A stretch of 64,000 nucleotides of DNA from Pavona decussata (Eukaryota). The stretch lies in NCBI GenBank assembly GCA_977016875.1, contig CDRNST010000199.1:248001-312000 (forward strand). The letters are read 5' to 3'. A program made the position numbers and the translations under genes. Below the pieces are notes generated by a model that searched no databases, was not told the DNA's origin, and saw only the letters and a list, made by a program, of their open reading frames with translations. The first letter of the stretch is position 1. Each line of letters begins with the position of its first letter. Positions 3,040 through 57,578 of this stretch are shown here, piece after piece.

Positions 3040-3078
<39 letters not shown>

Positions 3079-52152: not shown

Positions 52153-53050
52153 CCCGGGGGAAGGGGGCGGGGGGGGGGGGGTTCTTGGGTTCAGTTTTGC
52201 TGGGTATGTGCCGCTGGCCTCTCATAGCCCCTGCCCCATTATAGTCTATTTTGTGGCCAGCCCCATCCTAGTCACTTTTTGGGAAAATGTAATTTTCGCG
52301 ATCCTAACTAAGTCACCTTCTATTTATGCATCTACTTTCAAGAACGGAATGTAATGCGAGGTGATTGTTACATTTAAGGTGGGGGTTCACCTGAAAGCCG
52401 TTTTCGCGCCGCTTAAAATCGGTCAAATGAAAATATCTTATTTGCATTTCAAGCAGTACAAAAACCCTCCATTCATAACACAAATCAATGATTTGGGGTG
52501 TTTTATGAATTTTTGGGTGATTTTTAGGTATATTTGGATGCAGAGTCCCACCCTCACCGGTCCACCCGCCGAGGGAGCTCCGAAAACCTGTTGATGCTGA
52601 AAACATTATAAATAGGACGCGACAGCGTCTTTCCCTCCCATGTGGGACACATTTTCTTAGACGTGCACGAGGCACGGCCTCGTTTTGGTGCGAAGCTTGT
52701 TTTCGTCCTATAGCGGATAAAATCACTTTTTTCGTTCACAACTCTGACAGAAGTCTTGAACGCGTGGATTTCTTGACATCTTTTGGGTTAATGTTGATTA
52801 CATCAAGGATTTTCTTGAAAATGTTCGTCTTAATAAACAACAACTTTCTGAACTTTTTAACCGAGACCATTTTGAATCCCTACTTAATAGAATTTTCTTA
52901 CCCCAAAAATCCGAAAATGTGCGACACCATTCTAGTAACTCTATTGAATATGCAACCCCATTGCAGTCAATCCAGTCATGAAAATGCGACCCCATCCAGC
53001 GGCACATCCCCATTAGCCTCTTATAAGGAAGTAACCCCCCCCCCCCCCGG
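52153..53050. mobile_element. C/G-tract-ended MITE, probably with a nested truncated insertion (~52373-52856)
   Basis: CCCGGGGG..GGGGTTCTT and AAGTAACCCCCCCCCCCCGGG ends; abrupt internal change starting at TTAAGGTGGGGG. Confidence 0.45.
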
Positions 53051-53208
53051 GTTCTGCATGTACTGTTCAGTCAGCATCAGCCAGACATAACTATTAGTAA
53101 TCAATGATCTGTTACGTCAATGAGTAATCAATTGATTAATCATTAAGTATTGGCAATACTCAAGGGGTAATCAATTACTAATATTAATAGAACCAAAATT
53201 TTTGTGGG

Positions 53209-53610
53209 CTATTGACTACTCATTGATGTCATTGATTACTCATTGATATCATTGATTACTCATTGAAATCATTGATTACCAATTGATATCATTGATTACT
53301 CGTTGATATCATTGATTACTCATTGAAATCATTGATTACTCATTGAAATCATTGATTACTCATTGAAATCACTGATTACTCATTGATATCATTGATTGCT
53401 CATTGAAATCATTGATTACTAATTGATATCATTGATTACTCATTGATATCATTGATTACTCATTGGAATCGTTGATTACTCATTGAAATCATTGATTACT
53501 CATTGATATCATCGATTACTCATTGAAATCATTGATTACTAATTGATATCATTGATTACTCATTGATGTCATTGATTACTAATTGATATCATTGATTAAT
53601 AATTGATATT
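53209..53610. repeat. Minisatellite, ~20 copies of 20-bp CATTGATATCATTGATTACT (left half)
   Basis: Tandem units read directly, with variants GAAATC/GATGTC and ACTA/ACTC; no spacers. Confidence 0.95.
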
Positions 53611-53794
53611 ATTATACAATGCTGATGCTATCTCAATTTTGATTGGCTAAAAGCACCCCGCTAATTCTAGATGGCGCTGTGTCATCGCGTCACATCTACA
53701 GACACTGGCGTTTATGCATGTAGGTATGACGCGTTTTTGCAGACAATGGTTTTCGTCACCTGACAAGCTAGCCGGCGGTTTGAGCAAGATTGTC

Positions 53795-54979
53795 ATGGCG
53801 GAGTCCGCTCCAAGATTCGCGTCAGTCTCAGAAGCGGATTTAGGACGCCTTGTTGACGACAAGGACGCAAAGAACACCAAACGAGCTACCAAGACAGCTC
53901 TTAGAGTTTTACAGCAGTATTTGAAGGAGAAGAAAGTTCCCGAACCGCAAACCAAAGATGGCATCAGTAACGTTCTCAAACTATTTTATGCCGAAGCTAG
54001 AAAAGTCGATGGAACTTCTTATTCCAAAAGCACTCTCAACAGCCTGAGATTTGGACTGGGCAGACACTTCAAGGCGACTCTTGGCTTCGATATAATAAAC
54101 GATCCAGCATTTGCCGAGGCAAACAAAGTTTTTGGCGCCAAGTGCGTTGAACTAAAACGACAAGGGCTCGCCAAAGTCGAACACACGCCACCGATCTGCG
54201 AAGAAGATCTTAAAAAGCTGTACGAAAGCGATGTTTTTAACCAAAACAGCCCGGAAACGCTTCAAAACAAAGTTTTTTTCGAGGTTATGTTGTACTTTTG
54301 TCGCCGAGGAAGGCAAAATCTTCGTGAACTCAAAAAAGCTGATTTTTCATTCAGCACGGATGGCAAAGGTGCAAAACATGTGTGCAAAACAACAGATGAA
54401 CTCACAAACAACCGACGAGAAAATGATGAAGGATTTGAAGGAGGCGTGATGTTCGAGAAACCAGGACCACACTGTCCTGTGGCTTCATTTGAACGGTACA
54501 TACAGCACCTGAATCCCTCAAACGAATTTTTGTTTCAGCAGCCGAAGAAAAACGCCGGCATATCTGATCAAGTGTGGTACGATAACATGGTTGTCGGAGA
54601 GCGTTTGCTCGGTGAAAAAATGAAAAGGATCTCTCGAGAAGCCAAACTTTCAAAGTGTTACACCAATCACTCGATCAGGGCAACGGCGGTTACAATCCTG
54701 GACAAGTCCGGGTTCGAAGCAAGGCATATCATGGCGGTGAGCGGGCACAGAAATGAATCCAGCTTTCGGAGCTATAGCAGGACTGACATTTCAACCAAGA
54801 GAAAAATGTCGGAAACCCTGACGACAGAAAGCGAGGTGAGAGGTGAGGAAGTGGCTATTAATCCGCACCAGTTATCTCCTGTTATTAGCCTTTCTCAAGA
54901 GGAATTTATTGTACAGAACTCTCATTCAGAGATAACGAAAAATTTTAATTTCTTCAACTGTAATGTCAACATTCATTAA
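53795..54979 (+). CDS. Crypton-type tyrosine recombinase (DUF3504-related), intronless, ~394 aa
   Basis: Inside ORF 53714-54979; likely start MAESAPRFASVSE at 53795. YR catalytic motifs: YFCRRG (R), YTNHSIRAT (HxxR), IMAVSGHRNESSFRSY (H, Y). CPVASF, WYDN and C-terminal FFNCNVNI are typical of animal Crypton YRs. Confidence 0.9.
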   Translation: MAESAPRFASVSEADLGRLVDDKDAKNTKRATKTALRVLQQYLKEKKVPEPQTKDGISNVLKLFYAEARKVDGTSYSKSTLNSLRFGLGRHFKATLGFDIINDPAFAEANKVFGAKCVELKRQGLAKVEHTPPICEEDLKKLYESDVFNQNSPETLQNKVFFEVMLYFCRRGRQNLRELKKADFSFSTDGKGAKHVCKTTDELTNNRRENDEGFEGGVMFEKPGPHCPVASFERYIQHLNPSNEFLFQQPKKNAGISDQVWYDNMVVGERLLGEKMKRISREAKLSKCYTNHSIRATAVTILDKSGFEARHIMAVSGHRNESSFRSYSRTDISTKRKMSETLTTESEVRGEEVAINPHQLSPVISLSQEEFIVQNSHSEITKNFNFFNCNVNIH

Positions 54980-55020
54980 ACGCAAATCGGGAACATTTTT
55001 CATAAGACCGTACAACTTAA

Positions 55021-55848
55021 GGTGGCCGAACACAGTTTGCGCGCGCTTAACAGATTCTGTTAAGCGCGTTAAGCTTCGTGAAAAATGTGCTTTAATAAAT
55101 TGAATTGAAAATCTGTTAGGTGATGCTATTAACCGCGCGCTAGGGTTGTGGTAAGCAAATACTATCGATCCCTCGATTTTATACCAAATAGATCACAAAG
55201 GTAAGTTTTGCACTTAAAATAACTTAGTTTCTCGTTTGTGAATCCTTCTTCATTTATCGCCGAACAAGGAAAGTGAGTTTACAATGAGCTAAGCCTTTTT
55301 GTACGCTTTTCATCTTTGCTGAGAAAACCTAATTAAAAGCCACGCATGCGCATTTGAGCAAAAAATTGTGACTGGTTGTTTTAATGCAAATGAACTGTTT
55401 TCTAAGGAACCGCTCGTTAGAATTTCGTGAAATTTGACAAAACAGTAGTTTTCTATAAGCGTAACTTGCCTACAAACCAAAAACAAAATCTAACAGAAGG
55501 TATCTTCAAAAAACATTAAAGTGCAAAACCAACATTTACAGGAGATCTGTCTGTTAAAATTACATGGAAGAAGCGTCACTAAGTCAGTATTTTGTGAGTT
55601 TTTCTGGACACAAAAAATGGAAAAAATCTAACGAGTGCATTTTCCAAAAATTAAGAAAAACCATTATTTGTGGACGGTTAAAAGCTTGCTGCGTTGCCAT
55701 GGCAACGGCACCATGCTCAATAAGAAGTGTCAAAATTTATTCCTTCTTAGTTAATCTTGCACCATGCTAATTTCAGGTACTCAGAAGTATGTAGTTTTCA
55801 AATAATGTTTACTAACACCTGTGTACTGGAAAACTGTGTTCGGCCACC
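55021..55848. mobile_element. Non-autonomous TIR element (Kolobok-like) nested in the Crypton 3' region
   Basis: Perfect 18-bp TIR GGTGGCCGAACACAGTTT. TTAA TSD at 55017-55020 and 55849-55852. RR..YY termini with TTAA fit Kolobok rather than piggyBac. Confidence 0.85.
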
Positions 55849-56230
55849 TTAACTTTAGAATTTTGTTCAAAAGTTTCAGTTCGATTCAGTTTTTCCTGAA
55901 ACGTTTTCAGATGTTTTAAGCTTAAATCCTTTCTGTAAACCTTTTGAATTCCGCTTTACACGTTATTCACGGCTGTCATTAATAAAGATGTTTACACTGA
56001 AACGTGTCATTGCGTGGCTTACTTTGTTGTTGTTCTGTGAAATGTCTCAACGCTTGTACATTTATAATTGTATAATAAAACAATTATTGGATTCGGTTTT
56101 CGCATTATAGCGAAATTATCAAGGCCTTGGTTTGTGTTATCCGCCTCAGCCTTCGGCTTTGGCAGATAACACAAACCTCGGCCTTGATAATTCTCGCTAT
56201 CATGCTCAACCTCATCCAATAATTGCTTAT

Positions 56231-56645
56231 CATCGATTACTCATTGATATCATTGATTACTAACTGACATCATTGATTACCCATTGATATCATTGATTAC
56301 TCATTGATATCATTGATTACTCATTGATATCATTGATTATTAACTGACATCATTGATTACTAATTGATATCATTGATTACTAATTGATATCATTGATTAC
56401 TCATTGTTATCATTGATTACTCATTGAAATCATTGATTACTAATTAAAATCATTGATTACTAATTGATATCATTGATTACTAATTGATATCATTGATTAC
56501 TCATTGATATCATTGATTACTAATTAAAATCATTGATTACTAATTAAATATCATTGATTACTAATCGATATCATTGATTACTAATTGATATCACTGATTA
56601 CTCTATGACATCATTGATTACTCATTGATCTCACTGATTACTCAC
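56231..56645. repeat. Minisatellite, ~21 copies of the same 20-bp unit (right half)
   Basis: Same unit and orientation as 53209-53610; resumes immediately after the Crypton right end. Confidence 0.95.
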
Positions 56646-57377
56646 GATTAAAGATATAGAACCGTCATGCTTAATTTCCACACATGCATTTTATCCTTAT
56701 CTGGCTATTCAACAAATGTTTCGTTTCCCATCGCCCAACTAGCCCAATTTTTTGAAGTGACCACTGATATCTAACATACAAATGATCTTGAAACACCAGT
56801 TTTGAAGGGACAACGGCTTCTTTTAAATTTTCAATCTTGGGGACGACATATACTTCGAATTATTTCTTTTTTTTATTTCGTCGGCTGTCATTCTCGCAAT
56901 TATACCAACGGCTTTAATTTTTTTAATTTCCCATGCACAGATTCTATTTTTTGCCTTATCTTGGAGAAACTGTTATCCATCTTGAAAGAATTATTGCATA
57001 CCGTTTATCATAAGTAAGAAAAAAGTATGTTCCGTCGGCCAGTAAAATGACTATAAAGCCTTCCATTGTACCAGGATAGAAACAAGGAACAGTAAAGATG
57101 TGATTCAAAAATAAACGTGGAAACAACAAGTAAACACTGAAGGTGTTAGTTTTGAACAAATCAGTTGCCCTCTGGGATCATTTGGATATTTCCTGAACTC
57201 CCTTACCTTAGAACGATTAACAATCGGAAAACGCTATTTCGGAAATTATTTTCAGCCAACAGCAGTTTTCTTTATTTGTTTCGGGATAGACTTTTGACGA
57301 GGCAAGTGAATTATCTTACCTTATGCTGGCTACGGCCCAGTGTTGTCAATGCTGTTAACTTCTTTCTCTGTTTATTC

Positions 57378-57578
57378 GCGAGGGCGCTTATTTGAGGAAG
57401 CACTTATTCGAGGTGGGCTTATTTGAGGGTGCGTTTATTCGAGGGGCGCTTATTTGAGGGGACACTTTTTAGAGGGGGCTTATTTGAGGGCGCGTTTATT
57501 CGAGAGGCGCTTACTTAAGGAGGCACGTATTTGGGGGATTCGCTCATTCGAGGACTGCGCGCGCTTATTTTATTCGAA
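57378..57578. repeat. Degenerate tandem repeat, ~15-bp unit (GAGGGCGCTTATTYG)
   Basis: About 12 imperfect copies; typical of subterminal repeats in TIR elements. Confidence 0.8.

Follow-up and report, generated by a model that had tools for sequence, protein, structure and literature searches.

We found that a 20-bp minisatellite in the genome of the coral Pavona decussata is interrupted by a tyrosine-recombinase transposon of the Crypton kind. The locus lies in a stretch of 64,000 nucleotides, hereafter the window (GenBank assembly GCA_977016875.1, contig CDRNST010000199.1, positions 248,001 to 312,000 of the forward strand; coordinates below count from its first letter). Very probably, the insert is a young, multi-copy DUF3504-type Crypton that integrated into a pre-existing minisatellite at its usual short AT-rich target, and the array is not a special landing pad. 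The locus itself is ordinary, namely a site-preferring transposon in one suitable base string of a repeat array, with no sign of a function for the array-element pair. The family is of use to specialists as a very young animal Crypton, half of whose copies are intact and whose junction repeat and bipartite target are clearly defined, and lends itself well to tests of how eukaryotic transposons with a tyrosine recombinase select and cleave their sites.

The Crypton and its recombinase gene

Between the two halves of the minisatellite lie 2,614 bp (53614-56227; features in Table 1) whose one long open reading frame (ORF; second in-frame ATG at 53795) encodes a protein with Pfam matches to DUF3504 (PF12012; 45.6 bits against a cut-off of 29.7; residues 167-307) and Phage_integrase (PF00589; 28.0 bits against a cut-off of 27.1; residues 260-357). 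HSIR and GHR...Y motifs were read by eye in the translation near its C-terminus, and the nearest ESM-Atlas clusters are Mollusca and Cnidaria proteins with the domain pair DUF3504 + Phage_integrase. We infer that the encoded recombinase is the active enzyme. An inverted-repeat search found no terminal inverted repeats in the Crypton, giving only an internal 3' hairpin and no matching termini, and the other genomic copies stop at the same bases as the window copy. By its sequence, the element has the defining traits of a Crypton, i.e., a tyrosine recombinase, no reverse transcriptase, and neither long terminal repeats nor inverted terminal repeats. Its dispersed copies in unrelated flanks point to mobility, and the joining of DUF3504 to the recombinase core places it in the DUF3504 group, CryptonA.

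The canonical length between the junction repeats is 1,782-1,783 bp, and the canonical mobile unit is about 1.79 kb; the window copy is 832 bp longer owing to a nested insertion. This insertion is a miniature inverted-repeat transposable element (MITE) of 828 bp that sits 3' of the recombinase stop codon, and its TTAA flanks suggest a possible piggyBac-type origin. Public sequencing runs were examined as short-read contigs, those with this stretch being labelled corals or coral metagenomes, and a joint 55015->55848 (which skips 832), corresponding to the Crypton without the nested MITE, is present in contigs of all four runs. The word depth of the nested MITE is ~10-40x that of the Crypton in contigs of three DNA runs, as for a very high-copy family.

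Junction repeat and target motif

The flanks of the 37 other copies resemble neither one another nor the 20-bp unit, save for a duplicated locus (L014 = L035) and a right flank common to L029 and L039. A further 13 independent left flanks, from 14 metagenome contigs, display the same target pattern, again with no relation to the array unit. Nearly all copies have (T)ATTATT left of ATACAATG... and TATT(A/G)(T) right of ...AATAATTGCT, so that in one register TATTAT brackets each copy, at -7..-2 to its left and at +1..+6 to its right; the exact hexamer is found on the left in 25/36 and on the right in 17/36 of the other copies. Upstream of the left hexamer, positions -15..-12 favor ATAA (A30 T27 A29 A30 among the 37 other copies), which is exact in 18/36 other copies versus ~0.5 expected by chance, and the flanks of the copies are AT-rich (71% versus 61% for the window). 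The target form of this Crypton family is thus ATAA-N4-TATTAT.

The junction hexamers lose conservation outward, the left one toward 5' and the right one toward 3', and of the 25 copies with a non-consensus hexamer on either side, none carries an identical variant left and right. Because the two sides do not covary, we take TATTAT to be a crossover microhomology rather than a target-site duplication. The element therefore carries the short constant terminal direct repeats that act as microhomology in Cryptons, and the left/right partition of junction variants suggests a very short exchange region.

A microsatellite, i.e., a (TAA)n or (ATT)n run, stands at the junction in just 3/36 copies (L006, L018, L034). 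No more than a few bases separate three others (L017, L021, L023) from the termini of high-copy palindromic MITEs of two families (1,648 and 2,134 first-look candidates); L021 and L023 share one end of one family, in opposite orientations. Paralogous MITEs were considered as empty sites for these three and rejected, since the insertions fall just outside the MITE termini and the paralogs do not give the pre-insertion sequence.

Order of events and the choice of unit 20

An earlier note, made from the letters of the window, had described a tyrosine-recombinase element amid a 20-bp minisatellite, with the array in the same phase on both sides, next to the one unit that reads TAAT where the others have TACT, and integrated by way of a short shared core with no target-site duplication. 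This description stands: the two arrays flank the insert with the DUF3504 + Phage_integrase ORF, a comparison of all array units leaves unit 20 as the sole one with TAAT, and the 25 variant junction pairs that never covary bear out the lack of a target-site duplication. The common phase holds only on removal of 2,621 bp (53607-56227, the 2,614-bp insert plus 7 bases), which puts units 20 and 21 in perfect 20-bp register; in the phase test, excising 2,614 or 2,618 bp does not restore it. Because the 2,621-bp removal restores the register, the array was continuous before the insertion and is older than the Crypton. The array units diverge from their consensus by 10-12%, and the Crypton insert differs from its relatives by < 1%. 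The inserted 2,614 bp plus 7 bases are consistent with a 1,789-bp mobile unit whose joined ends read TATTAT then T, and the pre-insertion target fits TATCAT, one mismatch away from the core.

In unit 20, ATAA stands four bases ahead of TATTAT. Only this unit of the array offers the target motif, through a C-to-A change that creates ATAA followed by TATCAT, which is why the element sits there. With a target matrix of 11 bits built from 36 other copies, the window copy being left out, the reconstructed pre-insertion site scores 10.5 bits, the best in the ~820-bp array (next 9.0) and rank 19 of 121,764 window positions. Several higher-scoring window positions fall in one (ATT)n run near 3040-3060; this run (~3040-3070, - strand) has the top target-matrix scores of the whole window, yet is unoccupied.

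On the Goodwin/Kojima model for Cryptons, an excised circle with the joined ends ...AATAATTGCT-TATTAT-TATACAATG... would recombine with a chromosomal ATAA-N4-TATTAT, and a crossover inside the common TATTAT would keep one copy of the hexamer at each junction; we infer both the circular intermediate and the exact crossover register. Several observations weigh against integration at the usual target as we reconstruct it. The right hexamer of the window has C where 37/37 other copies have T, and a second construction of the matrix gave best array scores of 9.0 and 8.9 bits, either of which may be that of the true site. In the target, 4 bases separate the ATAA from the hexamer, against 5 in the element's own arm, so that the likeness is shifted by one base. 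No head-to-tail circle or tandem junction was detected by pattern search of the assembly or the metagenome contigs, and without such a junction or an empty allele the crossover register depends on the array phase alone. As to the enzyme, the putative catalytic residues are assigned by eye only, and a sequence search of solved structures with the recombinase returned none at an E-value <= 1.

An empty allele was not found in the contigs of the four public runs. One candidate, a joint 53257->56231 with 24 letters on its short side and between-letters unknown, was rejected, as the left array has a string much like it at 53505-53520, which can explain the joint. The back-joint of a circle was likewise absent among the matches listed in the contigs of these runs.

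Terminal hairpin and an alternative register

The 3' end of the Crypton folds into a 145-nt hairpin, at the base of which CAATTATTGG pairs with the terminal CCAATAATTG. The hairpin is confined to Crypton copies (96 first-look candidates, that is, ~48 loci in two orientations), and the idea that it is an independent MITE was discarded since it is found only together with the Crypton. When the ends of the Crypton are joined in silico, the stem grows by 12 bp and the folding energy falls from -57.7 to -64.8 or -65.4 kcal/mol, depending on the register of the joint.

These folds bear on a second register, in which the mobile unit would comprise the body and 4 further bases (circle junction GC-TTATTAT-ACAATG), and a 3-bp TAT insertion would have been present in the target unit beforehand, giving a near-perfect site. 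We consider it possible, though unlikely. The 12-mer inside the element (56067-56078) complements TTATTAT with ACAAT immediately after it, the form joined in this register folds slightly better (-65.4 versus -64.8 kcal/mol for the plus-7 joint), the element would favor a rare variant that creates its target, and the (TAA)n site L006 is compatible with both registers. However, it requires a 3-bp indel exactly at the insertion point, whereas just one indel, of 1 bp, is seen across the 41 array units, and it leaves the target ATAA two bases, not one, off register with the element's own arm.

The array as a target

The earlier note had further proposed that the array is a multi-copy, attB-like landing pad or, failing that, that the element promotes expansion of the array, and had taken the likeness of the adjoining unit to the element's right end as the clue. 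Part of that clue is sound: there is a real target preference, as attested by the exact ATAA in half of the other copies, and the 8-mer AATAATTG followed by TAT is present both in unit 20 and at the element's right end. The likeness is nonetheless limited to the one variant unit and has a one-base offset, and the family-wide spacing of ATAA is that of the window target, not that of the element's own arm.

That the element sought out the minisatellite as a landing pad is, in our view, highly improbable. Weak target matches are indeed 5-9x denser in the array than in the rest of the window (3.9% versus 0.42% of positions at >= 4 bits with the second matrix), and the unit beside the insertion has the 8-mer plus TAT in common with the element's right end. 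Against this, only one of the ~45-48 copies is in the array, the array is unique in the assembly, and within it only the single variant unit scores like the real sites. The earlier note had itself suggested comparing the flanks of all copies; those of the 36 other copies and of the 13 metagenome sites prove unrelated to the array unit, the very outcome that it had named as refuting its proposal.

Expansion of the array by the element or its recombinase is harder still to credit. The nearly equal halves (20.1 and 20.7 units) are what it has in its favor; yet the array is in phase across the insertion, returning to register on removal of 2,621 bp and hence continuous earlier, and the insert is far closer to its relatives than the array units are to their consensus. 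Arrays derived from the target flank no other copy on both sides, the few copies within (TAA)n or (ATT)n runs being in ordinary microsatellites, and moderately expanded runs of the motif exist in MITE-like elements that have no Crypton (see below). Lastly, the short direct repeats beside each copy might recall the target-site duplication of a DDE-type cut-and-paste transposon with an incidental integrase-like gene, a notion that we give next to no weight given that nearly all copies carry an identical repeat, its variants never agree across sides (0/25), terminal inverted repeats are absent, and the only long ORF is a tyrosine recombinase.

Copy number, age and spread of the family

An exact-pattern count gives 45 left ends of the Crypton in the assembly, and the search with the right-end hairpin gives ~48 loci. 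The pairwise identity of 38 aligned copies averages 99.1% (97.9-99.8%), the window copy having 7 private substitutions in this alignment, and the 421-codon frame is intact in 19/38. A contig of the canonical form, 1,664 nt long, is present in one coral metatranscriptome run. The family is probably transcribed, and it is young and plausibly still mobile. In the short-read contigs, where copies are collapsed, the word depth of the Crypton is ~70x that of the single-copy right flank, a depth that is not a copy number.

With size gauged solely by the spacing of matching left and right ends, two copies are internally deleted (C15:1758984-1759968, ~985 bp; C233:5875852-5877448, ~1,597 bp) and two have large nested insertions (C273:883451-888050, ~4.6 kb; C47:1631020-1643501, ~12.5 kb). 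At L008 (C204:3280120-3281901), the first 24 element bases are repeated directly upstream of a full copy with ATT between them, a pattern compatible with one copy having inserted into the 5' end of another and the pair then having collapsed by homologous recombination. Two pairs of copies, L029 and L039 (contig C78, 0.92 Mb apart) and L085 and L087 (metagenome contigs), have one flank in common at 99% and the other flank different; possible causes are recombination between copies, a duplication that broke within the element and, for the two metagenome copies, an assembly chimera.

Four full metagenome copies (L080, L085, L086, L087) are 99.6% identical to copies of this genome, and runs under five different organism codes contain Crypton 31-mers. 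The 0.6-1.5-kb flanks of L080, L086, L079 and L082 have no close counterpart in the assembly, with only partial matches at 70-83% or none, and for the same reason were set aside as a source of empty sites. Going by these sequences, either the metagenome copies come from hosts of other taxa, in which case recent horizontal spread would be indicated, or this assembly lacks the loci.

Comparison with known systems

The DUF3504-type Cryptons of animals, CryptonA, are tyrosine-recombinase DNA transposons (PMC3212892; Glomhopper paper, PMC13465315). The window element resembles them in its single ORF with a tyrosine recombinase and DUF3504, in having no reverse transcriptase, terminal inverted repeats or C-terminal DNA-binding domain, in its cnidarian host and in its nested transposon insertion, such insertions of other transposons having been reported in medaka Cryptons (PMC3212892, PMC13465315). 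In the 2011 survey, terminal repeats were not found in animal Cryptons (Kojima and Jurka 2011, PMC3212892); unlike the elements so described, this family has a 6-bp TATTAT junction repeat, an ATAA upstream in its target and a terminal hairpin of 145 nt. The CryptonF and CryptonS elements of fungi and oomycetes have terminal direct repeats of 4-6 bp (Goodwin et al. 2003, cited in PMC3212892). With these the family shares short, sequence-constant direct repeats at both ends, which are taken as the substrate of a circle-by-target recombination and as microhomology instead of a target-site duplication, but it has no GCR1_C domain, a different core (e.g., TATGG in CryptonS) and an animal host. CryptonV comprises target-site-specific cnidarian Cryptons with microsatellites as their insertion sites (Kapitonov and Jurka, Repbase Reports 2012, cited in PMC8869645). 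Here the likeness is in the cnidarian host, the marked target preference and the few copies in (TAA)n or (ATT)n; the description of CryptonV nonetheless sets the family apart, as its insertion is not microsatellite-specific (3/36) and most copies are at a single ATAA-N4-TATTAT in unique or transposon-derived DNA.

Beyond the Cryptons, integration in this family is comparable to the attP x attB recombination of phages (e.g., by lambda Int) in that crossover falls in a short common core, nothing is duplicated beyond the core, imperfect sites are tolerated and one target arm resembles an arm of the element's own site. It differs in that the common core is only 6 bp and no symmetric second arm is visible in the target. 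The attC sites of integrons and the attP of CTX phage are folded single-strand substrates of tyrosine recombinases, and the Crypton likewise has a long imperfect hairpin at its recombination site, a resemblance only, which is known here from the fold. One might go further and suppose that the recombination site is presented on the 145-nt hairpin, that the latter would be complete (+12 bp) only in the excised circle and would follow a folded or cruciform route like that of integron attC, and that this active animal Crypton has recently spread horizontally among coral hosts; this combined proposal, drawn by analogy, is speculative and we think it improbable.

Origin of the array and its surroundings

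Table 1. Features of the interrupted minisatellite and the inserted Crypton in the window.
Feature	Position	Strand	Basis
Outer part of inverted-repeat arm of a MITE-like family: terminus-like CCAGACATAAC, then short inverted runs of a 10-bp motif, then loop	53081..53210	.	Genome matches
Left 20-bp array	53211-53613		Tandem Repeats Finder: period 20, 20.1 copies, 90% matches
Left half of minisatellite, units 1-20	53211..53606	+	Repeat calls, phase test
Unit 20, the TAAT variant	53591-53606 plus core		
ATAA, upstream half of target motif, made by variant unit 20	53599..53602	+	Family position frequencies
Left junction repeat, TATTAT	53607..53612	+	Family comparison, phase test
Crypton body	53613..56227	+	At least 40 genomic matches (96-100% identity), each in two parts, element positions 1-1407 and 2232-2614
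Tyrosine-recombinase ORF, 421 codons	53714..54979	+	ORF list, Pfam; only long ORF of insert
TTAA flanks of nested MITE	55017-55020 and 55849-55852		
Nested MITE, 828 bp, with perfect 17-bp terminal inverted repeats starting GGTGGCCGAACACAG	55021..55848	.	No other copy has it
Internal 12-mer complementary to the predicted circle junction (core + first 5 bases of left end)	56067..56078	+	Fold of joined ends
Terminal hairpin, 145 nt	56081..56225	+	DNA fold -53.9 kcal/mol, z-score -15
Right junction repeat, here TATCAT	56228..56233	+	Read in window, family comparison
Right 20-bp array	56228-56642		Tandem Repeats Finder: period 20, 20.7 copies, 88% matches
Right half of minisatellite, units 21-41	56228..56645	+	Repeat calls, phase test

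The 130 bp ahead of the array, together with the first array units, belong to a dispersed inverted-repeat family, which window positions 53080-53320 match at 72-81% (556 first-look candidates). Complete MITE-like members (L045:850-1745 and L046:800-1715) are ~0.9 kb long and seem to have 6-bp target duplications; their long terminal inverted repeats are palindromic within themselves and consist of short runs of a 10-bp motif (TAATCAATGR / YCATTGATTA). BLAST of L045 and L046 against the window found no second inverted-repeat arm downstream of the array. Some other MITE-like members without a Crypton have moderately longer runs of the same motif, and a 31-base array-unit pattern with 2 mismatches allowed has 35 matches in the 602-Mb assembly, 33 of them within these two arrays. 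The minisatellite thus arose by the expansion, at this locus, of a subrepeat from one inverted-repeat arm of a MITE-like element, and nothing ties it specially to the Crypton.

On its left, the MITE arm is adjoined by a very abundant repeat (52854-53161), whose contig word depth is ~1,000-2,500x that of the single-copy flank in three DNA runs. The array lies ~5.7 kb from a promoter assigned to Smad6/7. The G-rich stretch at 57370-57537, 0.7 kb right of the array, is a tandem repeat whose periods of 16, 31 and 61 bp are nested in one another (GGGCGCTTATTTGAG-like unit).

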